From contig NC_134034.1 in the NCBI RefSeq assembly GCF_964204645.1, forward strand, positions 434,001 to 498,000: a stretch of DNA of 64,000 bases, given 5' to 3'. Position numbers and translations under genes: made by a program. Each line of letters begins with the position of its first letter. Position 1 is the first letter of the stretch. Below the pieces are notes generated by a model that searched no databases, was not told the DNA's origin, and saw only the letters and a program-made list of their open reading frames with translations. This DNA is from Tubulanus polymorphus. Lineage: Eukaryota; Animalia; Nemertea. This document shows positions 8,634-64,000 of the stretch, one piece after another.

Positions 8634-13449
<4,816 letters not shown>

Positions 13450-17208: not shown

Positions 17209-19075
17209 TTATCGTCCGTTTTGAATTTCGAATTTTCCCGGTTGCATCAGATCTTTATATTCGTGAAGAGCTTCTCGTAACGCGCGACACACCTGCGGAC
17301 TGGTCGACGTGATACAATCAACCAGATACGGATATAAATCGATCACCTGATACCAGATCTGTTTATCGATATTCTTCTGCGGAGCTTTCTTCAACGATTG
17401 GATCAACGTAGCGATCGCTTTCAGAACGAACGCCATCTCGGACATACGTGGTCGAGGTAGCGGACACTTTCCGCTCAGTTTCTCATCCTCGACGTATTTA
17501 CGTAAAACGTCTTGACAACGTTTCAACAATGAGTTGACGGCTAGTTTAGTGATGGAGCCCTCCGGCGACGACGAGCTGTTGTTCGTGATGAAGCTGAATT
17601 TCAGCAACGTTTCGAAGCAAGTTTTCGCGAATTCCTCGCGTAGTTTTTTACTGGAATCGGCGTCAATGAAACTCTCGCTGGTCGCCGAATGAATCGAACC
17701 ACGATTCAAAATATTCATAATCATCTCGACGAACTCGCGAGGGGTATTCCCTGCGTGAGGGAGGATATCCTCGCCGATTACGCGCACCAGACGACAGTCG
17801 ATATTCTCGTCTCGTTGGCAATCCTCGACGGTCATCGTCGGCGGCGGGGGATTCCCCGAAAACAGGAATTCCTCGATCGCCGAGGCCAACTCCGTCCACA
17901 TCCCGTCGAACGCGGCGCGGTGTTTCCTAGCGACCGGTAATCCGATTGTTAGAGTTTGAAAGAGAACGGTAACGGCGAGGTTCCACGTCGTCTGCGACAT
18001 ACAGCCGTATTTCATCGCGAGCGGAACTCGTAGCGTAGTTATAATATCCTGCATGACGTGATCGTGGATCACAGCCGGATGTCGCGCCGTTCTCTCGTAC
18101 ATCGCGATCACGAGATTCAACGATTTCTCGGCGAACGGAACGAAATTCATCAACACGTAATCGACCGACGGACCTCGAACGGCGTTGATACTTTTCGCGT
18201 CGATTATACCGTATTTAGGAGATTTAACGGCGTATTCGGCAAACGTGAGCAACTGATTGAATAATTCCGGATACATCGACTGCATCGACTCGGGTCCGTT
18301 CATGACGGCGTTCTGTAGAACGTCGACGGCGTTCAGAACAGCTTCCTGCAACGCCGTCACGTTCGTTTCGTTTATCGCCGGTAGAATAAACGGTGACGCG
18401 TCGCCTTGAACCGGAGCCGACAGCGCCCCCTTTAAAACGGCCGATAATTTCTGTAAGTCCGCCGCGACGAACCGATGTTTTATGTGCTCGAATAACGGCG
18501 GAAATATCTGTATGAGAGCGGTGAGGAACGGTTGAGACGGCACGTAGATATCGGTCGATGATTTCGAGTCCGGGGGTAACGTAACCTTACCGCCGATACT
18601 GAGCCAGACGCGCCACGCGTTCGACCACAGCTGAACCGAGTCTATTTTAATATCGTCGTTCTTCGTCGATATCATATCCTGCAACGAACGAAACATTTTC
18701 TCCTCGCTAGGCGCGGCTAGATCGGTACCGGTGGCGCCACCCGTCGCCGCGCGTGAATTACGCCTCGTATCCGTGTCGTTGCCGCTGGAACTGCCGCCAC
18801 TGCTGCGGTTGATCTGTAGAATCTCCTGGAAACTTTTCAACGCTGCGAGCGTTACCTCGGCGTTACGACATAAAGCAGACGCCTCGATGAATTCTAAAAG
18901 TAGCGCCCACGCTCGCGGGAAATCCCCGAGTTGTTCGAGAATGAATCGTTTAGCGTTGAAGACTCGCGCGACTCCGGCCAGCGTTAGAACCTGTGTCTCG
19001 GCCCATTGTTTCTCAGCAGTATCACGTGAGTGATGAATCAGAATATTCACCTGTAATTATAATAATAATAATAAT

Positions 19076-19132
<57 letters not shown>

Positions 19133-22100
19133 TCAATAAAAGCGCTTTACATTAAAAGAACGATCTCAAATCTCTTTAGGGATCAGTCATTAGGTATAGC
19201 TCGAAGCCATAGGTAGAAACTCAATGTCAAAAGTCTAGTATAATCTGCGTATACATCCAAACTAGGGCAGCTACAGTATCTAAACAAACCATAAGTAATT
19301 CAATGAAGACTTTTGCCACCCTGGGTCCAGTTCCACAGTTGTGAGTTAAGATTTAACTCAAGAGTTAACTCATTGAAAATGAACTAACTTTAACTCAGAG
19401 TTAACTCTAACTCACAACCGTGGAACTGGATCCTGTATGTTCATCTACGTCCACAGGAATGACACAGCCTTAAAAACAAATGCTCTATTTTCTGTGTGAC
19501 ACATACTTTTGAGTCCCTTATCTTAAAACAATCTACACCAAGATCAAAATTAATGATGCAGATAAAATCAATGATTATAGAAATCCCGAAATGAAACTGT
19601 TTGTTTATTACTGACCTGACCAGATTCGACCTTCGTGGTCGGAGCGCTACTCGATAACTTCTTCACCTTGTCCAACAACGGGAACAACACTTGCCACAGT
19701 ACGATCTGCCAGGTTTTCTGTTGTAACAATGATCCGTGCGCGCCGATCGTCGAGAACAACGTCTGCCCGGCGCTCTTACGAACGGGAGGTCGAGGATCGA
19801 CGCATAAATCGCCGAGCTTCGAAAACAAACACATCCACAGCGAATCGAACGGCTTCATTTCACCGACAGCGGTGGCGCCATCTTTTTTCTTATCGTCATC
19901 CGCGGCTGCCTCTGATTCGTCTTTCTCGAGGTCAATCTGAATTTGTTGTTGATTCTGATAGAAATAATCGGATATATTCCACATGAGACCGATCGCCGTC
20001 AGACTGATATTAACGTCCTGATTCTGCAGGCCGAACTTCGCCGCCACGGCAACCACCGATTGTAGGCAAGCAGATGGCATTAACGGCAGGAAATCTGTGA
20101 CGACTAACTGTAAACACTGGAACGCGATACGGATCAGATTCTCACCCTGATCGTTATTAACGGCTCCGATCACGGTGAGTATCAGCGCCCAACCGTGACC
20201 CAGACGATCTCCGTTATTGTGCAATATCTGCAGCACGCATTCGAGTTGTTTCTGTCGTATATCGGAGTGTTGTATCGCGGAGAGCTCCTGTAACGGGTTT
20301 AACAACATACCCTGGCGAGCGGGGTCGGCGTCTAAAGCCGGTTCGAACGCGTGCATCAACGCCGCTTTAATCAACGAGGTCAACGCCTCCGCGCCCCAAC
20401 CTCTCATACCGGCGTGCGGGTGCTGGCAAACTTCCAATAAATGAGCGGTCAGCGGTTTCCAGAGAACGCCGACGCGCGGTAAATTAACGAGTCCCGTCTC
20501 GAGGAGTTTCGCGACGGCGAACAACGACGGTTCACGATTGGAATACGCGAGTTCCATCGATTCGGCGGAGAGTTTACAGAGCGCGTCGATCAGATGATGT
20601 AACGCGACGTCGTCGAGATATTGAGAACTCTCGAATAATCGAGATAACATCGACGATAAAACCGGTAAATCAGCCATAACCGCCGTCGTTATAACCGCGT
20701 TTGAACCGTCGCTAGCCTGTTTCGAAGCTCTCATACTCCCGCCGGCCGCCGGCTTCAAACCTAAAATCCAAACCAGATGCTGAAGCGTCGTCAGTACGAG
20801 GTGCCACGCGTTGCCTAGGATACCGCCGTGACAATGAGCGACGCTGAGAATCGAGCGCATGCACTGAATGTTTTTCGCGGTGAGCATCACCGGATTCTGA
20901 TGAGCGCCGACCGGCGATGAAGCGGTCGGTAAAGCCGTACCGACCGCGACCACCTGACTCCTCTCGATCGCGTCCGGGTTAAAGAAGTCGTTTCCGCTCG
21001 GTGTTTTTTGATGCCCTTTCGGATGATGAACGGCGACCATGTTGAGAACGGTGAGAGCGTAGTGAGGAGGTAACGACGCTTTACACAGAGCTGTAATAAA
21101 CGCGTCGCGTGGAATATTCTGACCCAGTCGACCGGCGAGACTCGCGAACGTCTGCTCGGATTTCAGGATGGCCTCGGTGGCACTCTCGTCGGTACTCGCG
21201 TCGAGTAACAGCGACATCGCCGCGAGTACCCCGCACCACGACGAATTCAACAGTTCCTCGACGAGGGGTCGATTCTCCTCGTCTATTTCCAACGTCGACA
21301 TCGTTTCGTGCGCCGACGAATTTCTACGTTCCGTCGGTTTCGCTTTCGTCGTCACGGCGACGCTATCTACAATCTGTTGCACGGCTCGGATGACGTCGAG
21401 GAGGCACGCGAACGCGACCGAGATTCCGTAACCCTCCGAGATAACGGGTGGCTCCGTTTTATCGATCATCTCTAGATAAATCTGTTTAGAGTTACCGAGC
21501 GGGATGTTAGTCATTAACGGGATCCAGATACCGCGGTAGATGAACGCGGGCTGCGGGGAAACCCCGCCCCCGACGGGCATACCGGCGACTAACGCGGGAG
21601 GGGTACCCGTCGTATCGGGTACCCGCGCGCCCGGCTGATTCCCGCCCGTACCCACGCTAGACGTCGAGTTGAGAAACAGCGATTGGATGAACGCACCTAA
21701 CGCGTTAACGATATCTCGGAATATCTTCGTCGAATGCGGTTTCATATCGTAGCTGATGCAAAACGATCGCAGGTGCGCGGCAGATGCGCAGAACAGGTGC
21801 AGTACCTCTAACGCTAGCGCCCTCTGCCACATCGGTTTATCGCAATCGAGAAACTTGACGAGCAACGAGAGGAAAATCTCGCATTCGGTAACGAGTAGCG
21901 AGTAGTAGGATCGCACGAGGACGGCGACCATTCTGAGCAGACGCATCACAATCGGGAAGTGAGGTTTCTCGACCGGTGTCGGAGACGCCGGAGCCGGTAA
22001 CCCCTGACGATATTTCAAACTCGGCGAAAACAATTTAATTACGAGCGGACAAACTTGTTCTTTAACGAGGAAACTGAACTCGGAGTGACGTCGGAATATT

Positions 22101-22933
22101 TCGGGGAAAGCGGTGAGAACGGATTCCATCAATTCGAGACCGAACGTACGAGTCATCTCGTTAATCCCGTGCAGCCAGTGAGGCTGATCGGCGTTCACTA
22201 ACTGACACAGATCCTGAAACAACATGAACGCGTCTTGAGCGCACGGTCTCAAGGTCGGCGGAGGTTGTTTACCGAACGATTTCAACTGTTCGCACGTGGT
22301 GGTCGTCGCGAGCGCGTCGTCGTGGTCGGTGAACGCTCGATCCTCGGTTACGGCTCGTTCGAACACGCAGCTGACCAGCTGCCGTACGGTAGCTGCAGCT
22401 GTGTTTATCGTCGTGTTGTCCTTCGCGAAGTGAAGACGGAAACATAAAACGATCGCTTTAGAAAGAGCCTCGTGTTGGACGATCGAATTCGTCGTTAGCA
22501 ACAGAATCGTCGTCTGCAACAATTTCAATTCCTCGATTCCCGATTCCATTAACGACCACAGCGTACTGATCACGCTAGTGGCGCCACCTTTAGAGAGAAC
22601 CTCGTGAGATATGAGGCGTTGAATCGCTTGTAAACTCAACTGAACGAGTTTCGTGTTTTTCGTGTCGCAGCCGAGGACGAGAGGTTGTAAAATCTCCGCG
22701 TTGTGTTTCGATAGATTCGCCGGGATTTCTTCCGGTTTCGTCGAAATCGTCCGCAGTTTTAGCATACCCGATTCGGCTGCGTCTTTAACCGGTCCGTATT
22801 TACGTCGCGACTCGCTACTCAACTGTCTCAGATCCGTCAGCAGATTATCGATCAGTTTTTTCGAGATGATCAATTTCTGATCGACGCTCAACGAGCCTCC
22901 GCTCAATCTCGGGTTATTCTTGTTCGACGCCAT
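17209..22933 (-). CDS. MON2: Protein MON2 homolog (Sec7/BIG-like DCB and HUS domains, HEAT repeats), ~1719 aa, 2 exons
   Basis: Exons 22933-19616 and 19050-17209 (phase-0 GT-AG intron of 565 bp). Motifs [77 protein letters not shown]. Length is close to vertebrate MON2. Confidence 0.96.
19057..19133 (+). repeat. (AAT)n microsatellite at the 3' end of the MON2 intron
   Basis: About 25 AAT units abutting the acceptor AG on the minus strand. Confidence 0.95.
19324..19432. mobile_element. MITE, TIR ggtccagttccacagttgtgag, 3-bp CTG target-site duplication (PIF/Harbinger-like)
   Basis: ctg|ggtccagttccacagttgtgagtta...taactcacaaccgtggaactggatc|ctg. Related copies at 42941-43035, 44894-45000 (CTG both sides) and ~25140-25262. 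Confidence 0.8.
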
Positions 22934-23014
22934 GGCGACCGCGACAGCAACCGTCAGTATTGTTGAAGTATTTCTTTTAAAAATTCGACTCAAATTGTAC
23001 TGATTTCGACGCAA

Positions 23015-45400: not shown

Positions 45401-47737
45401 CTTACAACAACAATTGCATTTGAAGCTTAATTTTCAATATATCAGAAGCTTAGCTTTAGACATCCGATCTTACGCGCCCCATAAAATCCCAGCATATGGA
45501 GAAAACAGCGTATGAGCAACGGACAGGGATTGAATGAGGTACTTACAGTTTAGCGAATATGAGTAAACTAGGTGTAATAAGAGCTGTACCGAGTTGAGTC
45601 TGAACTTTACCAACAAGTGACAAACCAAGAAAGAACAGAGCTGTAGCGCTGAACGAATTAGCTGCAAAACAAATGTGAAATCTGATGATGTCATAGGGGG
45701 ATTTATAGAGTCTGACATCTTTATATCAGTGAATATAGATGAAATCAATGGATGATGTCATAGGGGGATTTATAGTCGGACATCTTTTTCTAGTAGTGAA
45801 TATAGATGAAATCAATGGATGATGTCATAGGGGGATTTATGGAGGCAGACATCTTTCATAATGGGCTTATATATCAAATGAAAAAAAAGATAATAACCAT
45901 ATGATGTAATAGGGGGATTAAAGGGAGCTCTATGAGTGTCTATAGATCAATTTGATGATGTCATAGGGTGAAACTACTAACCGAGTACAACGAGTATTCC
46001 GCTGATGATATTCGGTATGTTGTGATGGAAGATGAAATTCGCAATAATACCGACGATCGTCATGAGAACGATCGGGTTTAAAACGACTCCTCTAACGACG
46101 TGTAGAATAATCGCTCCGGTCCGTCTGCTCGTCGTAGTGGCACCATCTGACGACGACGACGCTGTTCGCTGATGATCGATCTCGAGTAACGTGAAACCAA
46201 TCGGATTTAGAATCATGAATGAGATCGGAGCAGCGAGGTAAATATACTGCAGGAAATCTGGGTTAGACTGTTCATATAGAGCTTGTACTGAAATATACCC
46301 GTGTAAACACTACTGTGATGTCATAGGGGGATCTATGGAGGCAGGCATCTTTTCTGGAAGTTCCTATAGACCAAATCACTAGTAGACAATTTGATGATGT
46401 CATAGGGGGATTTATGGAGGCAGATATCTTTTCTAGAAGAGTCTATAGATCTAATCACTAGTACACAATTTGATGATGTCATAGGGGGATTTATGGAGGT
46501 AGACATCTTTTCTGGAAGTGCCTATAGATCTAATCACTAGTAGACAATTTGATGATGTCATAGGGGGATTTATGGAGGCAGACATCTTTTCTAGAAGGGT
46601 CTATAGATGAAATCACTAGTAGACAATTTGATGATGTCATAGGGGAATTTATGGAGGCAGACATCTTTTCTAGAAGGGTCTGTAGATGAAATCACTAGTA
46701 AACAATTTGGTGATGTCATAGGAGGATTTATGGAGGAAGACATCTTTGCTAGAAGTGTCTATAGATCAAATAACTAGTAGACAATTTGATGACGTCATAG
46801 GGGGATTTATAGAGGCAGACATCTTTTCTAGAAGTGTTTATGAGATAAAATTATTAGTAGACAATTTGATGATGTCATAGGGTGATGTAATGAAGGTACT
46901 CACTGATTGGATAACCGAGTGCGAAGTCGTTGCTTTGCGTGGCGAATATCGCGAATATTCCAGCTTTCCCCAAACGGTTCAAACGCGTTAAAATTAACGT
47001 GAAAATAATCACTAGGAAAAATACGATTGATTTACCGATCAGTAAACTAGACAGGAACTTCCAGTTTACAGCTGAAAACATAATACAACATCATCATCAG
47101 CATTTCATCAGTTCAATCTGGAACCAGTTTCACAGTTTAATCTGGAACCAGTTTCACAGGGTGGCGCCCCTTTCCGCCCATTTATAAATACCCTTGGGCC
47201 GGTTGTATAGTCATGGCTTACATTTGAGACCAGTCCAAGACCAACTTAGTTCTATAACCAATCTAACAACCAGTCATAAGATTTAAGACCACTTTTGGAC
47301 TGGATGCATTGACATGGCTTAGATTTAAGACAAGTCTAAGACCAACTTAGTTCAATAGCATTATTTCCAGGTTTTTGGTAAAATTTGTCACATTCCCTTA
47401 AAGTTTTCTGCTATTTCTCTGATTCACTTAGTTTTTCCAGGTCAATGGTCTCCCCGCGACGACTTAATGCCAAATTCACTAAATTGCGGATTCCGGACTT
47501 ACTTTCAAACTTCAATTCGATCATACTCTTCAGGACTAAAGCCGGTAGAGCGAACTTTGAGATAAACGTTCCGATGCCTTTCGATTGGTTGCTGGAAATG
47601 AGGTTGAACCTGCCGGCGATGTAACCGGCGAGAATAATGAAGAAACACTGCACGATCGCCGGGTAAAGATTCTCGTACGCGTGGCCGCCTGATCGGTCGT
47701 GGTGATGACCGTGAGATGGCTTAGCAACCGAATCCAT
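39431..47737 (-). CDS. GPR155: GPR155/LYCHOS lysosomal cholesterol-sensing protein homolog (PIN/Mem_trans permease-like domain, GPCR-like TMs, C-terminal DEP), ~926 aa, 15 coding exons
   Basis: Exons 47737-47503, 47071-46904, 46287-45982, 45661-45547, 45215-45050, 44129-43974, 43887-43804, 43476-43268, 43183-43093, 42743-42509, 42392-41974, 41593-41498, 41407-41343, 41038-40898, 39725-39431 (2781 nt). Motifs LYPAIVQCFFIILAGYIAGR, FATQSNDFALGYPI, YLAAPISFMILNPIGF, FTGTDLVDWLL..GLAS..EAIAYGRRLL (DEP). Confidence 0.94.
39813..39919. mobile_element. MITE with ggtccagtttcac TIR flanked by CWG
   Basis: aacac-ctg|ggtccagtttcacaaaaa...tttttgtgaaactgggcc|cag. Confidence 0.7.
44228..44893 (+). repeat. 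20-bp minisatellite (~33 copies, ctggatccagttccacagtt) abutting a full MITE at 44894-45000
   Basis: The unit equals the CTG target site plus the first 17 nt of the MITE TIR. Confidence 0.96.
46315..46885 (+). repeat. ~82-bp family tandem array (~7 copies) filling GPR155 intron 2
   Basis: Direct reading. Confidence 0.95.
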
Positions 47738-48960: not shown

Positions 48961-49421
48961 TAGAGGTTATATTCGAAGTACTAAGGTTAATTTCAGCTGG
49001 TTTATCGTGCATTAAATCTGTTCAATATCGATCGAAAGTTTACTGTCCCCAATCAAATTCAATTCAACAACTTTATTATTCCCAACTGACTGAATCAGGG
49101 GGTAAGCAAGTAATTTTATTTAATACAGGTTGTTGTTAACTTGTCCAGGTCTCGTTGTTTAGTTAGGCTTCGTATTGAGTAGGCCTACAGCTACACTGTA
49201 GCTCTTAGTCTTAGTCCTGAAGTTGAAAGAGCTGATACCAGAGTAAAAAGCTTCTCGCTATTTAGGAATTTCATGCAGTGCTGAATGAATAAAGCTTAAG
49301 AAAGAGTCGACCTGTTATGTAAATTCATCATTGTTGAATTTTGTTGTTTGATTTGAAGGTTGAAACTAGATGGCGCCTGTTGTTGTCTGATAGAAGCCGA
49401 GGAGGAGGCGGTACTCGTATT

Positions 49422-52400
49422 ATGATTGACGGACAGGAAGTAGCCGGTGGTCTCGCCGGTGACCAGGCTTCCTTTTACATCGGAGGTGGAGAGGTAAGTG
49501 TTGCAGGGTGTGGGTTGAGAGGGGGTTGCACAGTCCACAGACTGAGAGGGGTACAGGATGAACGGCTGATGTAGATCCTGGTTTAGGGGGCTGAGTGGAT
49601 CCCGGTTTAGGGGGCTGAGTAGATCCCGGTTGAGGGGCTGAGTGGATCCCGGTTTAGGGGGCTGAGTAGATCCCGGTTGAGGGGCGGAGTGGATCCCAGT
49701 TGAGGGGCTGAGTAGATCCCGGTTGAGGGGCTGAGTAGATCCCGGTTGAGGGGCTGAGTAGATCCCGGTTTAGGGGCTGAGTAGATCCCGGTTGAGGGGC
49801 TGAGTAGATCCCGGTTGAGGGGCTGAGTAGATCCCGGTTGAGGGGGCTGATGTAGATCCCGGTTGAGGGGCTGAGTAGATCCCGGTTGAGGGGGCTGATG
49901 TAGATCCCGGTTGAGGGGCTGAGTAGATCCCGGTTGAGGGGGCTGATGTAGATCCCGGTTGAGGGGCTGAGTAGATCCCGGTTGAGGGGTCCAATCAATA
50001 TTTTATTCTGTATATTTATTTTAAGGATCAAGATGATGATTGTAAACGTAAAGTTGTTATCGGAATTTGTGCAATGGCTAAAAAATCTCATTCTCAACCG
50101 ATGCGCGAGATTCTCGAACGTCTCGAGAGGTTTCCGTACATATCGATACTGGTATTCGATGAACAGGTCGTTTTGAGTGAACCGGTCGACCGGTGGCCGG
50201 TCGTCGACTGTTTAATATCGTTCTATTCGAAAGGGTTCTGTTTGGATAAAGCTATAGAATACGAGAGACATTGTAAACCATACGTTATCAATGATTTACC
50301 GATGCAGTATCAAATCATGGACAGGTAAGTTTGTATTAGATCAGTTTTAAAAGTGTTCGCGGTGATGAGAGAGTGTTGTCGAGATATTAGTTTTAAAAGT
50401 GTCCCCGGTGATGAGAGAGTGTTGTCGAGATATTAGTTTTAAAAGTGTCCCCGGTGATGAGAGAGTGTTGTCGAGATATTAGTTTTAAAAGTGTCCCCGG
50501 TGATGAGAGTGTGTTGTCGAGATATTAGTTTTTAAAGTGTCCCCGGTGATGAGAGAGTGTTGTCGAGATATCAGTTTTAAAAGTGTCCCCGGTGATGAGA
50601 GAGTGTTGTCGAGATATTAGTTTTTAAAGTGTCCCCGGTGATGAGAGAGTGTTGTCGAGATATCAGTTTTAAAAGTGTCCCCGGTGATGAGAGAGTGTTG
50701 TCGAGATATCAGTTTTAAAAGTGTCCCCGGTGATGAGAGATTGTTGTCGAGATATCAGTTTTAAAAGTGTCCCCGGTGATGAGAGAGTGTTGTCGAGATA
50801 TCAGTTTTAAAAGTGTCCCCGGTGATGAGAGAGTGTTGTCGAGATATCAGTTTTAAAAGTGTCCCCGGTGAGGAGAGAGTGTTGTCGAGATATCAGTTTT
50901 AAAAGTGTCCCCGGTGAGGAGAGAGTGTTGTCGAGATATCAGTTTTAAAAGTTCCGGGTGATGAGAGAGTGTTGTCGAGATATCAGTTTTAAAAGTGTCC
51001 CCGGTGATGAGAGAGTGTTGTCGAGATATCAGTTTTAAAAGTGTCCCCGGTGATGAGAGAGTGTTGTCGAGATATCAGTTTTAAAAGTGTCCCCGGTGAT
51101 GAGAGAGTGTTGTCGAGATATCAGTTTTAAAAGTGTCCCCGGTGATGAGAGAGTGTTGTCGAGATATCAGTTTTAAAAGTGTCCCCGGTGATGAGAGAGT
51201 GTTGTCGAGATATCAGTTTTAAAAGTGTCCCCGGTGATGAGAGAGTGTTGTCGAGATATCAGTTTTAAAAGTGTCCCCGGTGATGAGAGAGTGTTGTCGA
51301 GATATCAGTTTTAAAAGTGTCCCCGGTGATGAGAGAGTGTTGTCGAGATATCAGTTTTAAAAGTGTCCCCGGTGATGAGAGAGTGTTGTCGAGATATCAG
51401 TTTTAAAAGTGTCCCCGGTGATGAGAGAGTGTTGTCGAGATATCAGTTTTAAAAGTGTCCCCGGTGATGAGAGAGTGTTGTCGAGATATCAGTTTTAAAA
51501 GTGTCCCCGGTGATGAGAGAGTGTTGTCGAGATATCAGTTTTAAAAGTGTCCCTGGTGATGAGAGAGTGTTGTCAGTTTGATTTAATTGTATTCTCTGCA
51601 GACGGACGGTTTATAAGATTCTACGACGAAACGGAATCCCGCATCCTCGATTCGAAATTCTGAATCGTCGCGAAGACCAACCAGGAAGTGAGTACACTGA
51701 TCTAGTAGTACCCTAATACATCCTCAGAGTACCCTAATACATCCTCAGAGTACCCTAATACATCCTCAGAGTACCCTAATACATCCTCAGAGTACCCTTA
51801 TACATCCTCAGAGTACCCTTATACATCCTCAGAGTACCCTAATACATCCTCAGAGTACCCTAATACATCCTCAGAGTACCCTTATACATCCTCAGAGTAC
51901 CCTTATACATCCTCAGAGTACCCTTATACATCCTCAGAGTACCCTAATACATCCTCAGAGTACCCTAATACATCCTCAGAGTACCCTAATACATCCTCAG
52001 AGTACCCTAATACATCCTCAGAGTACCCTTATACATCCTCAGAGTACCCTAATACATCCTCAGAGTAGCCTAATACATCCTCAGAGTACCCTAATACATC
52101 CTCAGAGTACCCTTATACTCCCCTCACTGAAGATCTGTATTATTTTCAGCTTGCATTCCCGGATGTTCATTGGTTGAATCCGATGATCATATCGAGGTCA
52201 ATGGCGTCGTGTTTCACAAACCGTTTGTTGAGAAACCGGTTTCCGCTGAGGATCATAATGTATTTATATATTTCCCGACAAGCGCTGGTGGCGGCAGTCA
52301 GAGATTATTCAGAAAGGTGCGTGCACGAACAACCAAACACCTGAATAGGGACACTTTAAAGTTAACGTAAAGTTTTTGAAAAGTTATTAATCCTTGTAGA

Positions 52401-55400
52401 AAAGATGTCTACCTCCATAAATCCCCCTATGACATCATCTAATTGTCTACTACTGATTTGATCTATAGACCCTTCTAGTGTCTGCCTTCATAAATCCCCC
52501 TATGACATCATCAAATTGTCTACTACTGATTTGATCTATAGACACTTCTAGAAAAGATGTCTGTCTAAATAAATCCCCCTATGACATCATCTAATTGTCT
52601 TCTAGTGATAAGATCTATAGATACTTCTAGAAAAGATGTCTGCCTCTATAGATCCCCCTATGACATCATAATGGTTGTAAGTTATCTATTACAGATTGGT
52701 AGTAGAAGCAGTGTTTATTCACCGGTCAGTCGAGTCAGGAAAACTGGGTCGTTCATTTACGAGGATTTCATGCCGACAGACGGAACCGACGTAAAGGTAA
52801 AAACCGGATTCGGACTTCATCTCTCGTACTAGAGCCAGTTCTACAGTCCAGTACCAAGTTCTAGTGATTGAACTGCAGTAGCTGTTGAAGCTGGTAATAA
52901 TTGAACGGTTTCTCGGTTACAGGTATATACAGTAGGACCGGAATACGCTCACGCCGAGGCTCGTAAATCTCCGGCCCTCGACGGTAAAGTCGAACGCGAC
53001 CACAACGGGAAAGAGGTTCGTTACCCGGTGATACTCAGCGGACCGGAGAAAACAATGGCGCGTAAAGTCAGCCTCGCTTTCACTGTAAGTACTACGACAT
53101 CTAGGGAAGGGTTGATTAAGAGCAAGTGTCTATATATGTCTCTCTCTCTCTGCGTTTCAGCAAACAGTTTGTGGTTTTGATTTACTACGAGCGAACGGAG
53201 AATCGTTTGTCTGCGACGTCAACGGTTTCAGCTTCGTTAAAAACAGTCAGAAATATTACGACGACTGCGCAAAAATTCTCGGGTGAGTTGAACATTCTCA
53301 AGTGAGAGTTTAACATTAATCAGGTGAGAGTTGAACATTAATCAGAGGAGAGTTGATGATTCTTGGGTGAGAGTTGAAAATTCTCGGCTGAGTTTCACTT
53401 TGATTAAGCCACTAGTAGAACTGTTATTGTTAAGGCATTGATTTGATTTTTAGGAATATGGCAATGCGTAAAATGGCGCCACAATTATCGATACCATGGT
53501 CAATAACGTTTCAGCCGGAGGATATACCTATAGTACCGACTACTTACGGCACAATGTACGTCTCAAATATCAATATCGAATCTCAAAATGTGACGAGTAG
53601 TTTTAAGAATTTGATATTTTACCCGTTACATTGTGGTGATATTTCAGGATGGAATTGCGTTGCGTAATCGCTGTTATACGTCACGGAGATCGAACCCCGA
53701 AACAGAAAATGAAAATGGAGGTCAAGCATAAAAAGTGAGTGAAATATAACACGATGGCGCCACTTACCCGGTGATCAGGGAGAAGTTCGGGAATCTTTCT
53801 TTTCATTAATTAAAGTCTGGGAATTTTGTAGAAAAGCTGAAAATCAGAGAAATTTGTTGAAATCATGGGTGAAATCAAACAGTATCCATTTATGTTTTTA
53901 TATTTGTGTTAATTGATTGGATTCTGAGTAGATCAGGGAAAACAATGTGGATGTCAGGGAATAATCGAGTCGAAATAAAGTGGCCCCCAAACCGGGTCCT
54001 ACTGGTCGTGATTGTTGATGTTTTGTAATTTTTGCTTTTTCTCGATAGATTTTTCGAACTATTCGAAAAATATGACGGCTACAAGAACGGCCATCTTAAA
54101 CTGAAACGGCCGCGTCAGTTACAGGAAGTACTCGATATCGCTCGGTCGTTGCTAGCGGAGATCGATCAGAACTCGGCTCCGGAGATTGAAGAGAAACGAT
54201 CGAAACTCGAACAGTTAAAGGCCGTTCTAGAAATGTACGGACATTTCTCCGGAATCAATCGTAAGGTGCAGTTAAAATATCAACCACAAGGTCGTCCGCG
54301 AAGGTCATCCAGTGACGACGGTACGTTGTATTTCACATGAATCCCCCTATGACATCATCGAACTGATACTAGCCTTTGTACTATTTATCCATCTAGAAAA
54401 GATGTCTGCCTTCATGAATCCCCCTATGACATCATCAAATTGACTAATAATGATTTGATCTGCCCTTCTAGGAAAGATGTCTGCTAGCATACATCCCCCT
54501 ATGACATCATTAACAAATAGGCAACTTTGCAATTTGATTTATACTGGTGTAGTAGATCTTTAGACCCATACCGGTCTATCGATGATGTCATAGGGGGTAT
54601 TTAATGCCGGATTTTAGTGTATTCTACTATTTTACAGACAACACTATTTGGTGGAGCAGTACTAGTGATGATGGTATGTCTATTGTCTCCGCTGCAATCA
54701 ATCAAAACTCAACCGAATAAACAACAATCACTTTTTTTCGATCTTCGCTTTGCGTGCTTTTTATTTTATCGATCCTAAAAATTCAGTCAATTTTCTTTCT
54801 TAAATCTAGACCTGGTTTTAGAGAGATTTTACGGACAGTAGCCTAACTAAAATAGATCTAAATTCAAGAGCTTTGTACCCCCTCCTCTGATCATCATTAT
54901 CACAGGATTTGATCTTTCTTGTAGTGGAACTAGTGTTCTACTGTTGAGCTCAGTATGGGCCAGTCGTCAATAACTAGAATATGCTTAAACTGGTCTTCAA
55001 TCTAAACCTGACTGTGCAACTGATGTGAAATTCAGATACTTAGATTAAATCTTGACTTCCGAACCCGAGTCAATTGCTCAAAAGTTGCTTAACCATCAGA
55101 CCGAAGTTACCCCTTGGAGTAAACCCTTTAACCAGGGCCAATTTTTCATAACTCAATCTTGAGTGAGTTCCACAAATACCATTGTTGCAATGCTATTTCA
55201 ATCATTACTATGGCATTTATACACTTGTTAAATTTAACCAACTTTTGAGCAACTGCAGCGCCCCCTGCGTGACAACCACAAACACCGTAGCGTAACAATG
55301 ATAAACTATGGTTATAATTGATGATTCCCAGAGATTATTTTGGCCAGATATCCATTCAGTTTTAATCAGTTTTATCCCCTGGTTTAATTCGAACCCGTTT

Positions 55401-58400
55401 TTGAGAGTAACTGATTCTAATTTCGAGAGTGATATTTCTATGTATTTCAGATTCTCCTCGTGAGCCGTCGTTGGTATTGATATTGAAATGGGGCGGTGAA
55501 TTAACGCCGGCCGGACGCGTACAAGCTGAAGAACTGGGCAAAGCGTTTCGTTGCATGTACCCTGGCGGTGAGGGTAAGAATTAATAGACATATATCATAC
55601 CGTTTACGCATTGCCACATTGTTATCGCTACGGCAACCGGCATATTTATTTAAACGGAAAGTTGCGGTCCACGGCACACGAGAGTACAAGAGGTCAGTTT
55701 CACCTTGGAATTATCAAATGATTACTCCAAGGCTTCACAGACGAGATTTAACACCGGTTTAAGCTCATTTTAGTTCTACGGCCAGTCTAACGACGTTAAG
55801 ACCAGTCTAAACATAGTTTTCTTACTAATCTTACAAATTCAGACCAGTGAAACATGTGTTGGACTGTGAATCGACCCCTCTCCGTTGTGCTGTGGGTTTT
55901 TTGAAGTTCCTCTATGCCGGTTGTCGTCTAATAAAGCACTTTCTACTAGTGTGTGATGATTTCTCTAATAAGCACTGCCGCCGGAGATGATGATGGCTGA
56001 CATCTTGTTTTTGAAGTTTTGCCCCATTACACTAAGACTTCACCAGTCTTTTCTGCAATGCAACTAATAGTCACATCTTCCTTACTAGATCTGTTGCTTT
56101 CTATTCAAATATTTGACTGGGGGGGGGGGGGGTAAGGGTAAGGGGAGAGGTAGTAGCATCACTAAGTGAAGACTTAGATTTAAGACTAGTCGTAGTCTGT
56201 CATGATCTAATGTGGCACTTAGGGCCTAGTTGCACAGTCTTGACTTAAAGTCCAAAATGGTCTTGAAATCTTAAGACCTGTCTTAAGTTCCTAGATTAGG
56301 TATAGAAGTAAGACTGTCTTAGACTGGAGTTAAATCCCGTACAGCTGAGCCCCTGAATTCAAGATTTTAAGTCTATTCAAAATCTGAAACCAGAACTAGA
56401 AATGAGAAATGCAGAAACAGTTTGGCAATGTTCAAGAATTGATATTGTCTGTTAAAATTCTTTTGAAAAAAGTGTTTCTTTTATTCGAAATGTTTTGCAT
56501 GAATTACGCTATCGTTGTTACTCGCTGCTCCCTGGCAAACTGAAACTATTAAATACTCGCTGCTCCCTGATACTTATATTAATGAAAGTGTTATTGGTGG
56601 AATGGAATAGTTTGAATTTAAAATCTTTAGATTCTGCCGATGAATTGATAGCTGGACGTATTTAAAAAAAAGTTTTTTTTTGGGAGCGCGGCCTTCAGTT
56701 ATCCATGATTTAGTGTTGGATTTATCGTTTTATCACAGGCGACTACGGACATTCTCCGGGACTCGGGTTGCTACGGTTACACAGTACGTATCGTCACGAT
56801 CTGAAGATTTACGCGTCCGACGAAGGTCGTGTTCAGATGACCGCAGCAGCATTCGCGAAGGTAATCATCATCATTTCTCCGCTCGCCGGGAGCGGTCAGT
56901 AGCATGCAAACTGGTGCCACCTGGTGGATCCCCACTTGCCTCAAGTGGAATCCTCTATTGCCGCAGTAGTTGATGTCCTACTGCACACTAGCGACACCTG
57001 GTGGATCCTCACTTGCCACACGTGGAATCCTCTATTGTCGCAAATGTTGATATCCTACTGCACACTAACGACACCTGGTGGATACTCTATTGCTTGATTG
57101 GTGGATCTCTCTCTGATTGGAGTGTTTGTATTATTTTGCAGGGTTTGCTCGCTCTCGAAGGTGAATTGACTCCGATTCTAGTTCAAATGGTAAAATCAGC
57201 GAACACGAATGGTTTACTGGACAACGACAATATCAGTTTATCTAAATATCAGAATCAGTAAGTTCTTCCACTAACGAGATACACAGCAGGTAGTGGACGG
57301 GAAAGTGGAAATTTGTTTAAATATGTCATCCATTTCCGGGTATTATTTCGTTTTAAGTGAATTGAGAGAAAGAAAAAGTTGCGATTTTTGGAAAAATAAA
57401 ATTGTCGTTTCTACATAAATTTGTGAATAATTTCAGAACGGATGATAATAGATTCATGTATGTATCTAGAATGCACTTGATTCTCATTAGAGATTTGTTA
57501 AGGATGTGTAGTGATAGGGGAATGGGGGAGGGGGTGTATAGATTGGGAGTGTGGGGAGTAGTGATAGGGAAGAGGAGTGTGGAGTAGTGATATGGGGAAT
57601 GGGGGAAGGGAGGATTGATGGGGAGTGGGGGAGTAGTGACAGGAGTGGGGGGAGTAGTGAAAGGGGAGCCAACACAGATCTCCTATAAGTCTCTAGTGAG
57701 GATCGTAATCTTTATAGGAATATCTCAGCAAACTGATTGATGCAATGCATGAGAAACTGGGTCCTGACAAGATGGCCGCTTCCTTAGAATCCCCCTATGA
57801 CATCATACTGGTCGAAGCAATAATTGTAATTCATAATTTCAATGGTATTCTAAGGTATTTTGATGATGATGTCATTGGGGGGATTTATGGTGGCAGTTAT
57901 CTTTTCAGGAATTTGATAATGTTGATGTCATAGGTGGATTTTATGCGGGCAGCCATCTTGTCTGGAAGGCGGGGTCTAGTGCATTTTACTTGTACCGGTA
58001 TTGTACGTCTGCGTGAAACAGAACTATTGTATTTCTACGCCAAAAAAATATCTGAGAAAAGACTTTCGAAAAATGCTAAAATGCTTGTTATTTTCTTGAT
58101 GCAGCGCGAGCAGACGTTCGTCAGCGGACGTGAAAATTGTTTCCAGAAATTTAAGATCATTCAGGCCCTTTTTAATTGTGCTCTCCTAAAATAGAAATAA
58201 TTTAATATCACTTTCAATTATACTGTGTTCGAAAGTTTTGGCCCTAAATCTTACTGTTTCTGGTCGCAACAGAAATTTCCCATGGAGAATAATCTTCTGT
58301 TCGAGCCCAATTGAAAAGTGCCTTAATTATTTGCATGTGTACAAGAAATTCTGCTTGTCTATGTGTTTCATCCATTGAGTCATGGCCCCGGGTCACGGCC

Positions 58401-61400
58401 CGCGGATCGCGATGGGCAATGATTTTCAAGGCAATTTTCTGTTTTATTCAGAGCTAAAGAAACTCTACGCGAGATGCTTCACGTTGATAGTGATTTCAGT
58501 AATAAACAGTCGTATGATAAGGTTTGTATTGTTCGAGATACACAGCTCAGTTAAACAGTCATTAAGACTTCTGTGCAAAAGATGTCTTTGAATCTTAAGA
58601 CTGGTTTCTCTAAGTTGTTAGATTAACTATAGAACTAGGTTGAGCTTAGACTGGTGTCTCTTAAGTTGTTAAATTAACTATAGAACTAAGATGAGCTTAG
58701 ACTGGTCAGAATATTAATTATTCAACCGGCAAGAGCTCCCTTTTAGATCGACAGTTCAAGTAAAGTTCATTTAGAACCGTAAGAGATTGAAATATGTGTT
58801 GTTTTGTTTTTCAGTTGGCCCCGACCGGTAGCATGGCTCTCATCAACGCTATGCAGTTCGTTAAGAATCCGTTCCAGGCTTGTAAACTGCTTTATGAGTT
58901 AATACGAAAACTGAACGCTAGAATCCGCACTTTAAAACAAGACCCAGCCAGTAGAGGTGAGTACAGGGGGCCAGCCAGTACCAGTGAGTAAGGGTTAGTA
59001 TAGGGGTCAGCCAGTAGAGGTTAGTGGGAGTGTTGGCCAGCCAGCAGGGGTTACTACACAGGGTCAGCCAGTCAGGGTAGTGGTAAGTACTGGGGGTCAG
59101 CCAACTAGTAAGGTTTAGTACTTTGGGTTTATTCAATAATTGGTAAAAAAAAGTTGAAACAATTCATCTGTTCGTTCTCTAACATTAATCTGAAAAAAAT
59201 AGATATCTCACTGTTGTCGATGTTTATTTGCACAGATCTGAAACTGTATCACGGTGAAACCTGGGAACTGATGACTCGTCGATGGAGTAAACTAGAGAAA
59301 GATTTCATGCAGAAAAACAATCGTTTTGCAATCTCTAAAATTCCCGATATTTACGATTGTATAAAATACGATCTGCAGCACAATCAATCAGTTTTACAGT
59401 TCGATCAGGCAGATGAACTACATACGTATTCTAAAGCATTAGCTGATCTTATCATTCCACAGGTACATTACTAATTCCCTCTCTCCTCCTCCCCTCCCCC
59501 TCCTCTCACTCCCCTTTCCCTCCTCTCTCCTCCCTCCTCTCATTCCCCTCCCCCCTCCTCTCCCCTTCCCCTCTCTCTCCCCTTCCCCTCTCTCTCCCCT
59601 TCCCCTCCTCTCTCCCCTCCTCTCACTCCCCTCCCCCTCCTCTCACTCCCCTCCCCCTCCTCTCACTCCCCTCCCCCTCCTCTCACTCCCCTCCCCCTCC
59701 TCTCACTCCCCTCCCCCTCCTCTCACTCCCCTCCCCCTCCTCTCACTCCCCTCCCCTCCTCTCACTCGCCTCCCCCTCCTCTCACTCCTCCCTCCTCTCA
59801 CTCCCCTCCACCTCCTCTCACTCCCCTCCCCCTCTCGCCGAAAAACTGCATGAATGTTGCCAGTTTCATAGGCAACATTTTAATAGTTAGTTTATTTTGT
59901 ATTGTTTTGATTTTCCGTACAGGAATACGGGGTCACAATGGAACAGAAAATACAAATAGCTCAAAGTATTTGTACGCCATTACTGCGTAAAATAAAGGGT
60001 GATTTACAGAGAAATATTGACGAGGAAAGCACTAGACTGGACACAAGGTAGGCTCCTAGAATATATAAATCATGGATCCGTCTCGGTATTGAGTGGTTGG
60101 CTCCGTGTGGATTTGATTTCCGCGTCTGCTCAAGTTGTTTCTATGTATTAATGTATATTTGTATGATTGTACAGGTATTCTACGAGCGTACTGACTCCCG
60201 GCAGACACGTTCGAACGCGGCTGGCGTCTGCTCAAGTTGTTACTCCAGGCAGACACGTTCGAACGCGGCTGGCGTCTGCTCAAGTTGTTTCTATGTATTA
60301 ATGTATATTTGTATGATTGTACAGGTATTCTACGAGCGTACTGACTCCCGGCAGACACGTTCGAACACGCCTATATTTCACCAGTGAATCACATATACAT
60401 TCATTACTGACTCTCATCAGATACGGAGGATTGTGCAATAACCAGGTGAGTGCTTTTAGAATTACTCGGATAAAACCTGTCTATCGGCAAACATCCACCA
60501 GCAGAGAGTGGGAGGGAGAGGGAGAGGGAGAGTCAGGAGAGGGAGAGGGAGAGTCAGGAGAGGGAGAGGGAGAGTCAGGAGAGGGAGAAAGGGATAGGTA
60601 GAGGGAGAGCCAGGAAAGGGAGGGGAGAGCGGGAAAGGGAGAGAGGGAAGAGGGGCAACAATTTGAACACTTCTCTGACTCTCCTAGTACATACTCAGGG
60701 TGGCGCCACTTACCTGGAAATTAGAGAATAGTCAGGAAATTTTATTTTCTTTAAAAAAGTCCGGGAATTTTGTTTAAAACAGCAAAAAAAACAAGTGAAA
60801 TATGTGGAGATTGACGAATCAGACGTAAACTCAAACAGTTTCCATCTATGTGTTACGTATTTGACTGCGTTAATTGTTTGGATTCTTAACAGATTGAGTC
60901 AGGGAAAAACAACATGTCAGGGAATAGTCAAATAATAGTGGCCATCCTGATGGATAATGATTAGATGGAGGTTTTCATTGACCTTCATAAACGTCCCTGA
61001 ACTTTTCGAAGATGTTTATTTATATTTGAATGTAGAATGATCCTCAGTGGTTGAGAGCTATGGATTACGTGAGTGCGACCTCAGAGTTGAACTATATGAC
61101 TCAAATTGTTATCATGATGTATGAAGATCCAAATAAGGTCGGTTTATTAAAATGATTATCTAATTATTAATTCAATTAATTAATATTTTATTTGTTTAGT
61201 AATTCTGTATTGTTTGTTTCTAGGATCCGTCGTCGGATGACCGGTTCCACGTGGAATTACACTTCAGTCCCGGAGCTCAAACTTGTGAAACGGATCCGAA
61301 ATATCCGCTCGGGTTCGGATATCGACCTCAAGGGATCGATCGCGGCAAGGTACGTCACAATTCCACTGTGGAACTCAACCCAGTTCCACTACGGAATTCA

Positions 61401-64000
61401 ACCCAGTTCCACTGTGGAACTGAGTCCAGAACTGTGGAACTGGATCCAGAACTGCAGAACTGGATCCAGAACTGTCTGACTGGGTTCAGAATTGTGGAAC
61501 TGGGTTCAGAATTGTGGAACCGGGTCCAGAACTGTGGAACTGAGCTCAGAATTGTCGAACTGGATTCAGAACTGTGGAACTGGATTCAGAACTGAGGAAC
61601 TGCTCTTAAAATAAAATTCATATCAGTTTTATTTCTGATTTTCTATAAAAAGCGAACGACATCGAAATCATCTCAATCAAATCAGAACGCTTCCACTTGT
61701 AAAGACTCATCGGATATAAAGAAAGTCCGGATAATCTCTCCGTCTGTTACTCCAGACGATGACTCCGACGTTACTAGCGCCGCTGCTGCTATAGATGATG
61801 ACGATCCAGTTGATGATGATGATAGTGATGATGATGAAGGCCCAGAGGTGGCGCCTATTGCAACCCCGCCCAGTAAGTAAAGTGTGAAACTGTGCACTCT
61901 AAATTCACCCTTTTTGGTTCATCTTAGATTTCTCAAAATTTTTTCAAAATTCAAAATCTAAATGGGTTATGCGTATTTCAGGGAGTCCGCCAGTTTTATT
62001 CTCGGAGACTAGCCGTGATATTCTACTTGGATCCGGGCCAGCTGGATCCACGGGGCCAGCTGGATCCACGGGGCCGGTGTGTCGTAGCATAGCAGAACAT
62101 TCCGAAACTAATGTCGTAAGTTATGCTTTATCAATTCCTACTTATCTCGATCAGCTTATCATTCATTTTAATATCTTATCATTCATCTTTCTGTCTTATC
62201 TCTTATCAATCAAATCTTTCTCCTATCCTCTCACAACATGGATCCAAATCTGCTCTGCTTTTATGAAGTCTTTTTCAGAAACGTTTATTTGGGAAGTTTT
62301 GTTCCTATCATTTTGCTAAAAGTTCTCAACTCAGTTCCACAGTTCTCATTGGACACACCGGGTCCTGGTTGTACGCACCGGGTCCTGGTTGTAAGCACTG
62401 AGTCCTGGGCTTTTAGTCATATTTCAGTCTTTGTTTTGAATTGAGGTTTAATCATAGATTTTCATGCGTTCAGGGAAATGTTTTATTTAGTTTTTGATTT
62501 TGACTGTTGTTTTGTTGTTGAGACTGACCACAGTTTATTGAGATTACTGACACGCATAACACAATCCCTGCCCTCCTCACTCCTCCCTGCCCACTCCACC
62601 TCCCTGCCTCCCTCCCCACTCCACCTCCCTGCCTCCCTGCCCACTCCACCTCCCTGCCTCCCTCACCGGAGGATGAGCGCAGTTAAACCATCGTCTTTCC
62701 AGGAGCCACTGAACTCAAACGTGGAATCCCCGCAGCCCGGAAATCAGATGGTTGTTGATATCGATCTCGTTCCCGATGAAGCTTTCAGAGAATTTGCACG
62801 CCTGCTCGTTGATGAATGCGTGTCAAGGTCATTGAAAAATTATGAAATGGAATCCGTCTGCCGGATGCATGTAACAAATACCAGTAGTGACAATCGAGAC
62901 GATACCGAGCTGAGTTTGAAAGCAGCTGAAATTTTTGACGTCGAAAACATAGAATTCACAGACGTGGGCTGCATTACGGACTGCGTTCCGGACTACGTTC
63001 CGGACTGCGTTTTGGATTATTTCCAGAAATCCGAAGTTCGTCTGATTCGTAGCGCATCATGTGACATCGTATTCAGCAGTTCATCATCGAATTCTTCGGG
63101 AAATCCCGCGACACGTCTGTCTACATCGGTAACCACGGTTACAGCTGACTGCTGGAGCGACGCGACTGATCGCACAAAATCAACAAAATTAAAACAATTC
63201 GCGTCGGATTTAGGTATCGTCACAACAGCATCTGGTCGTCGTAGTAACGACATGAACGTGTCTAATTCGTCGGATTTGATGGCGACTGACGGTAGAGTCG
63301 ACTCCTCGTCGCGACTCCGGGAGTCGTGGAAGGAATTCGTGGAGAAATACAACGCGACCGCCGGACGGAAATCAGAAGCAGACGACGGAGACATCAGCTG
63401 CTGCAGCGACGACTCGTTCTACGACGCTCTTCGTCCGGAGGATTGCGACTGGTTTCAGAGAATCACTCGTTTAAAAACGGCCGCGCTACGCGAGACTGAG
63501 GCTGCCGCCGCGGTCGCCGTGGCAACATCGGCGAAAAAACAACGACGATTGTTGAAGATACGAAAAAAATGTCGCTGCGAATCGACGAAAAAAATCTCCG
63601 ATTCGCAAGATTCGTTCAGCGAAGGCTTCTACGAATCATCGGTTAGTCCGAGTAGCTGCGATTGGTACCACCAGGGGGCGTTGAAACCGGCGTCCGAGTC
63701 GAGTCGTTTTAATTTCGCCGTCGATTTTCATCAACTCGGCGTCGAATTAGACATCGTCGATAGCGACCCGGAGATCGTAACCATAGCGACGGCAGATGGA
63801 CGGAGTTTACATCGAGTGAGCGCTCACGAGGAACTCATCGTCGACGATGACAGCTCCGATCCGTTATCTCTAACGAGTCTATTCCTGGACGGTGGCGCCA
63901 TCGGTGGCGGGAAAACGACGAACGACGACGGTTTCAAACTTCATAAAACGCGAAGCGTCGAAAAACTTTTCAATTTGATCGAAAACGAAACGAATTCGAA
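49422..64000 (+). CDS. PPIP5K: PPIP5K/VIP1 inositol hexakisphosphate and diphosphoinositol-pentakisphosphate kinase (ATP-grasp kinase plus histidine acid phosphatase), 3' incomplete
   Basis: Exons 49422-49493, 50026-50324, 51602-51687, 52150-52316, 52695-52796, 52923-53084, 53161-53282, 53454-53555, 53648-53734, 54049-54320, 55451-55573, 56739-56860, 57142-57257, 58452-58521, 58815-58956, 59236-59462, 59923-60047, 60325-60445, 61036-61137, 61224-61349, 61653-61872, 61982-62115, and probably 62523-end. Motifs [74 protein letters not shown]. Confidence 0.95.
49565..49990 (+). repeat. 21-25-bp G-rich minisatellite in PPIP5K intron 1
   Basis: gtagatcccggttgaggggctga units. Confidence 0.95.
50338..51575 (+). 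repeat. 44-bp minisatellite (~28 copies) filling PPIP5K intron 2
   Basis: Unit gatatcagttttaaaagtgtccccggtgatgagagagtgttgtc(ga); near-identical copies. Confidence 0.97.
51706..52118 (+). repeat. 20-bp minisatellite (~20 copies) filling PPIP5K intron 3
   Basis: Unit gagtaccct(a/t)atacatcctca. Confidence 0.97.
59475..59836 (+). repeat. Polypyrimidine ~20-bp tandem tract
   Basis: (tctcactcccctccccctcc)n. Similar purine/pyrimidine tracts at 35320-35690, 43525-43795, 57510-57670 and 60505-60655. Confidence 0.9.
61360..61600 (-). repeat. 20-bp MITE-terminus-like minisatellite in a PPIP5K intron
   Basis: gaactgtggaactggatcca units, the reverse complement of the 44228-44893 unit. Confidence 0.9.

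Follow-up and report, generated by a model that had tools for sequence, protein, structure and literature searches.

A probable lineage-specific cassette exon in the disordered PPIP5K tail of a ribbon worm

What is encoded by a very long open reading frame that lies within an intron of the PPIP5K tail in the ribbon worm Tubulanus polymorphus? The frame runs off the end of the stretch of DNA analysed here (64,000 nucleotides, hereafter the window), and the original prediction proposed that it belongs to a PPIP5K isoform, or to a nested gene, that scaffolds protein kinase A (PKA) at ER contact sites by means of an anchoring helix and a VAP-binding FFAT-like motif. How PPIP5K is positioned for local InsP8 pools is an open question, and a naturally occurring isoform that carries an anchoring helix of its own would allow PPIP5K placement to be tested directly. 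The prediction also held that nothing of the kind had been described for PPIP5K. This agrees with the literature search, which found no PKA-anchoring or VAP link and no paper joining PPIP5K with FFAT or VAPB; the papers that mention PPIP5K together with AKAPs look, by title, like gene lists.

The PPIP5K gene around the frame

PPIP5K occupies the + strand from about position 49400, and its kinase and phosphatase exons can be read individually in translation. The N-terminal exon is 56% identical to a full-length homolog, while exon 59154-59471 matches His_Phos_2 in Pfam, and 80 related loci align to this exon at 57-78% identity. Thus, an N-terminal kinase region and a histidine-phosphatase domain occur in one gene, as in PPIP5K/Vip1, when the gene is followed exon by exon. 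Because the exons were treated one by one, the isoform lengths given below are arithmetic. Positions above 64000 are window-extended (L002 position + 60000). The parts of the gene upstream of the giant frame are as follows.

50026..61349, + strand: about 20 small kinase and histidine-phosphatase exons, identified by their translations, the His_Phos_2 match and homolog identity
61653..61872, + strand: probable first exon of the disordered tail, acidic, phase 0 to 1, predicted from splice sites and frame
61982..62115, + strand: second tail exon, phase 1 to 0, placed by splice sites and frame; its donor would either feed the giant exon or skip it in frame

The gene continues past the giant frame with eight further exons from 65042, which add about 380 codons. 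The conserved tail motifs of animal PPIP5Ks, which are also found in the homologs, lie downstream of the giant frame in exons L003:799-918 and L003:2851-3072.

Several other features of the locus were recorded. At 60150-60325, a phosphatase exon has its acceptor and beginning partly duplicated in tandem, immediately ahead of the intact copy at 60325-60445; the extra copies are decoy acceptors. GCT-type microsatellites (L002:4429-4486 and L003:950-985) each stand right behind a PPIP5K donor and mimic Cys-rich tails. A Mem_trans (GPR155-like) exon on the minus strand (47411-47737) is head to head with PPIP5K, and glycyl-tRNA synthetase-like exons, assigned by eye, are tail to tail with it (L003:4978-10000, minus). 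Further away on the minus strand are class C GPCR-like exons of the glutamate or calcium-sensing receptor type (8634-12628, by eye) and what we take to be a MON2-like gene, consisting largely of two very long exons of about 1150 and 610 codons (17209-23014). At 18 kb beyond the window end, the DNA codes for a protein identical to an NCBI entry labelled Tubulanus polymorphus. An OSGEPL1-like gene contains a single-exon piggyBac-derived protein of 813 aa (L004:2211-4652; PF13843; NCBI LOC141912046), with relatives at 48%.

Extent and coding status of the frame

The more than 490 stop-free codons of the original prediction were recovered as 492 codons without a stop at 62523-64000. The open frame begins no later than 62478 and ends about 510 bases beyond the window, at L002:4514 (window-extended 64514), giving 678 codons from the ATG at 62478. 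Each of the remaining five frames contains 21-47 stops, and in shuffles of the region (n=3000) the longest open run was 262 codons, with a mean of 116. The ATG at 62478 is disfavoured as a start because one haplotype carries a 4-nt insertion at 62504.

The predicted phase relationship also holds: donor 62115 is of phase 0, and its frame is continued by the GAG acceptor at 62522. Three in-frame acceptors compete for the start of the exon: 62523 (GAG, score 6.3), 62703 (CAG, 6.8) and 63027, the strongest (13.8). At the other end, a phase-0 donor at 64415 (L002:4415) scores 6.9, and most of PPIP5K's own donors score 3-11; all these scores are rough, since they come from a matrix of PPIP5K's own sites in which two training donors are probably misplaced. 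Acceptor 65042 is of phase 0, like donor 62115, so the giant frame could be skipped without loss of frame. Both of its ends have canonical splice sites of matching phase, as in a cassette exon. The original prediction included neither the two better acceptors (62703 and 63027) nor the donor at 64415 and the conserved tail exons beyond it. The acceptors divide the frame into three parts.

62523..62702, + strand: extends the frame at its 5' end, behind the weak GAG acceptor; made up largely of a C-rich tandem repeat with a 25-nt unit, and probably intron
62703..63026, + strand: optional 5' part of the giant exon; CAG acceptor (6.8), frame open, CpG at exon level, no evident constraint
63027..64000, continuing to donor 64415, + strand: constrained core of the giant exon; acceptor 13.8; acidic, Ser-rich, predicted disordered

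The frame proposed for the exon stands, but a start at 62523 is improbable. The first part is C-rich over 62523-62672, with the tandem repeat at 62575-62663, and both its CpG frequency (0.013 per base) and its codon score (-0.3) are intron-like. The Pro-rich start of the frame was judged intronic. The exon is most likely 571 or 463 codons long, and not 631. It is reasonably likely that 62703-63026 is included in some transcripts, because the frame is still open there and the CpG level is that of an exon.

The composition of the DNA changes at the edges of the proposed exon. CpG is 0.05-0.14 per base in the exon stretch, compared with 0.013-0.042 in introns, with drops at about 62700 and 64415, and both CpG and GC are at exon level throughout 62703-64415. 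By codon usage, the giant frame did not stand out from the other frames. Among the variants listed, 40 of 86 rows that cover 23 of the 25 in-frame differences of the fullest run, 13 of the 23 substitutions are silent where 7.1 are expected (P=0.008, DNA runs), the counts being small and mostly from one haplotype. The core at 63027-64415 contains 13 silent and 6 replacement variants among those listed (pN/pS 0.13, P=1.6e-5), which shows purifying selection on this part. The stretch 62703-63026 has no silent and four replacement variants among those listed; the contrast with the core (P=0.024) falls at the acceptor position, but it was noticed after both had been seen, and four variants cannot show neutrality. 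Two indels within the frame, a 6-nt deletion and a 3-nt insertion, both keep the frame, whereas most intronic indels do not.

Three sequencing runs over the stretch are of genomic origin, reading through introns with zero splice joints, and an RNA-like run had no reads on the giant frame and none on the neighbouring small exons either. A multi-copy mobile element was ruled out, the frame being single copy in the genome, and a repeat scan revealed no tandem array apart from short internal repeats. The encoded insert contains 20% Asp+Glu and 13% Ser. A single-sequence AlphaFold2 model, made with no alignment, has a mean pLDDT of 36 and consists of low-confidence coil with scattered helices.

Relatives of the giant exon were sought in several collections. 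None was found in a word search for products of 347-1104 aa, among all 1.84 billion 50% representatives, or elsewhere in the worm's own genome, and the exon has no match in Pfam or in PDB sequences. Atlas matches at 0.76 with low recognition were taken as noise. When a natural mite-like homolog of full length served as the query of a word search, the matches listed were all arthropods. These searches suggest that the exon is probably lineage-specific. The range of 347-1104 aa would include a stand-alone product of 613 aa as well as a tail-only form of about 960 aa made by splicing; since the NCBI proteins of T. polymorphus are within the searched collection and none was found, such a product is probably not annotated. 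Probably, the public gene model skips or lacks the giant exon, a conclusion that for the full-length isoform of about 1900 aa is based on the blank search of representatives.

The lack of RNA, annotation or relatives among these results would fit a decayed or never-used intronic open frame whose motifs arose by chance. There is only a very slight chance of this, given the silent excess, the frame-keeping indels, the exon-like CpG, the matched phases at both ends and the single copy.

The ATG at 62673, which is located where the original prediction put it, could serve an alternative first exon or a nested gene encoding a non-catalytic, tail-only scaffold. It has a purine at -3 and is placed where the exon-like composition starts. 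Such a start is nevertheless very unlikely, because no product of 347-1104 residues was found and the in-frame acceptors account for the frame without a new promoter. Of the two forms in which the prediction was cast, a large tail exon is supported by frame, phase, composition and polymorphism, while a stand-alone nested gene is disfavoured.

Alternatively, the transcript could read past 64415 into a Cys-rich stretch and stop at 64514, making the frame a terminal exon. The resulting PPIP5K would be missing the conserved tail motifs and would end in a tail that is possibly lipid-modified. The 32 further open codons, which are Cys-rich, and poly(A)-like hexamers at 64923, 65004 and 65069 are consistent with termination here. 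The Cys run is, however, a 3-nt microsatellite with a similar repeat behind another PPIP5K donor (L003:950-985), and CpG falls at donor 64415, whose score is normal, which makes a terminal exon unlikely.

The best explanation, and a probable one, is that the frame forms a large cassette exon, frame-symmetric and lineage-specific, within the disordered tail at the C-terminus of ribbon-worm PPIP5K. From its frame, phases, composition and purifying selection, we infer that this phase 0-0 exon is spliced and can be skipped. Inclusion, through acceptor 63027 or 62703 and donor 64415, would insert 463 or 571 residues, acidic and rich in Ser, after the phosphatase domain and ahead of the conserved tail motifs. 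Skipping, by joining 62115 to 65042, would keep the frame and make the ordinary enzyme. The exon would probably serve one isoform as a spacer and docking platform, which would shift the location or the partners of the enzyme and leave its catalytic domains untouched.

Candidate docking motifs

A docking role would depend on short motifs within the exon, and four candidate sites were located.

62781..62843, + strand: AKAP-like helix with an FA motif from 62793; hydrophobic or small residues at 5, 6, 9, 10, 13 and 14, aromatic at 17
63414..63434, + strand: borderline FFAT-like core with a partly acidic flank; 3.0 suboptimal elements, or 2.5 if Tyr3 is unpenalised
63534..63569, + strand: basic cluster where a predicted helix ends (model residues 246-268)
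63624..63644, + strand: second FFAT-like string, poor; score 3.5-4.0

The best motif candidate is the putative PKA-anchoring helix, which would be present only with the upstream acceptor. Helices that anchor the type-I (RI) subunit of PKA have F/Y at position 1, Ala at 2 and hydrophobic residues at 5, 6, 9, 10, 13, 14 and 17 (PMC12083921). Counting from the Phe at 62793, the ribbon-worm segment follows this rule under a pattern that accepted Cys, found at position 9, and Ser, found at 13; position 17 is Tyr. The helix was correctly placed by the original prediction, but its spacing is not that of RII anchors; RII-specific anchoring was dropped, and the segment is better read as a candidate RI or dual anchor. 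The type-I pattern occurs in 0.2-0.4% of exon shuffles, having been fixed after the sequence had been seen, and it is absent from 135 of 135 other PPIP5K tails in a largely redundant set. The same pattern also turns up in ordinary proteins of this genome, both folded helical ones and membrane proteins (background 280 kb). Type-I AKAPs have an amphipathic helix 14-18 residues long; the ribbon-worm segment is helical in both AlphaFold2 models, but its hydrophobic moment is only 0.2. Pfam and PDB gave no match for it. Whether the helix anchors PKA in vivo is doubtful.

The FFAT-like core was also found where predicted, and is borderline. In the published score table (S2), the cut-off is 2 suboptimal elements, and targeting is lost at 2.5-3 (PMC3261905). 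The ribbon-worm core exceeds this cut-off, mainly through the penalty for Arg at 7. Its score is reached in 6-15% of shuffles, the bare four-residue core in 2%, and a score of 3 or better in 9 of 135 PPIP5K tails (largely redundant). It is the best FFAT-like site in the exon and lies within the constrained part, where its sole variant among those listed is silent; in the low-confidence AlphaFold2 model it borders on a short helix. Real but weak VAP binding by this candidate is a tentative possibility, and such a site would bind VAP weakly at most.

The remaining predicted sites fared unevenly. The second FFAT-like motif is in place but scores poorly. The basic cluster, located as predicted, is a possible membrane-binding or nuclear-import patch. 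The PKA-type RRMS site exists at 62667-62678; it lies upstream of both better acceptors (62703 and 63027) and was judged intronic as an RRxS site. A further PKA-like site occurs near 64017.

Once RII is replaced by RI, the original proposal amounts to one particular version of the cassette exon: the long isoform would anchor PKA and be tethered to the ER through VAP, coupling cAMP and inositol-pyrophosphate signalling. If true, cAMP signalling and InsP8 synthesis would be physically linked at ER contacts. In line with this proposal, the helix conforms to the FA rule and to the published hydrophobic spacing and is rare in shuffles and in other tails, and the single listed variant in the FFAT-like core is silent. 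RI, RII and MSP-domain genes are all present in the genome, and the pairing of an AKAP with an FFAT motif is known in AKAP220 and AKAP110 (PMC3261905). Against it, the FFAT score is in the range of lost targeting and is readily reached by chance, the helix has a low hydrophobic moment and a pattern that was picked post hoc and is shared with ordinary proteins, and the strongest acceptor, 63027, leaves the helix out, in a stretch where all four listed variants are replacements. Altogether, a PKA-ER scaffold is very unlikely. A choice between acceptors 62703 and 63027 that switches PKA anchoring on and off in a VAP-docked PPIP5K isoform is similarly improbable. As it stands, the locus probably holds an unannotated large exon in one species, with one good-looking motif and one marginal motif.

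Comparison with known systems

Members of the PPIP5K/Vip1 family, such as human PPIP5K1 and PPIP5K2, likewise have a kinase, a histidine-phosphatase and a disordered C-terminal tail, and are alternatively spliced. The ribbon-worm gene differs in having an insert of 460-570 codons without a relative. Long internal exons preferentially code for disordered regions (PMC9825244). The PPIP5K1 tail binds the exocyst, and a docking-surface role for the insert would be in line with such partner binding (PMC13573052).

Long inserts are also found in the PPIP5K tails of other animals. Five metagenome loci share a tail exon of about 280-330 codons with 27-39% mutual identity.

L052:5059-6102, L058:3910-5103, L063:3377-4339, L071:6118-7221 and L084:6417-7676: metagenome tail exon, probable annelids

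These loci presumably come from gutless marine oligochaetes. Their tail exon is fast-evolving with short conserved ends, and a later exon carries a long His run. In four beetle PPIP5Ks (P0107, P0112, P0114 and P0120), a conserved tail segment has about 260-290 residues extra when compared with a fifth (P0110). The beetle and metagenome inserts resemble the ribbon-worm exon in being long, fast-changing and disordered and in following the phosphatase end ahead of the conserved tail motifs. In contrast, they are about half its size, contain no type-I helix and at most a borderline FFAT motif, and share no sequence similarity with it (best E 0.007 in 135, outside the insert). Sequence comparison thus suggests that long disordered inserts in the PPIP5K tail arose separately in other animals. 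Two further metagenome loci (L079 and L086) resemble vertebrate PPIP5K2 and were left out of further comparison. Intronless PPIP5K genes with His-rich N-termini and long tails (L029:1549-6393, L030 and L034) are close in sequence to an entry from the gall mite Aceria.

Among known PKA anchors, AKAP220 (AKAP11), AKAP110 (AKAP3), SKIP/SPHKAP and smAKAP have an FA-type helix for RI (PMC12083921), as does the ribbon-worm candidate, and AKAP220 and AKAP110 carry FFAT-like motifs too (PMC3261905). These AKAPs are non-homologous scaffolds with tested binding and conserved motifs, whereas in the ribbon worm a putative site, accompanied by a weaker FFAT-like motif, lies in an insert within an enzyme.
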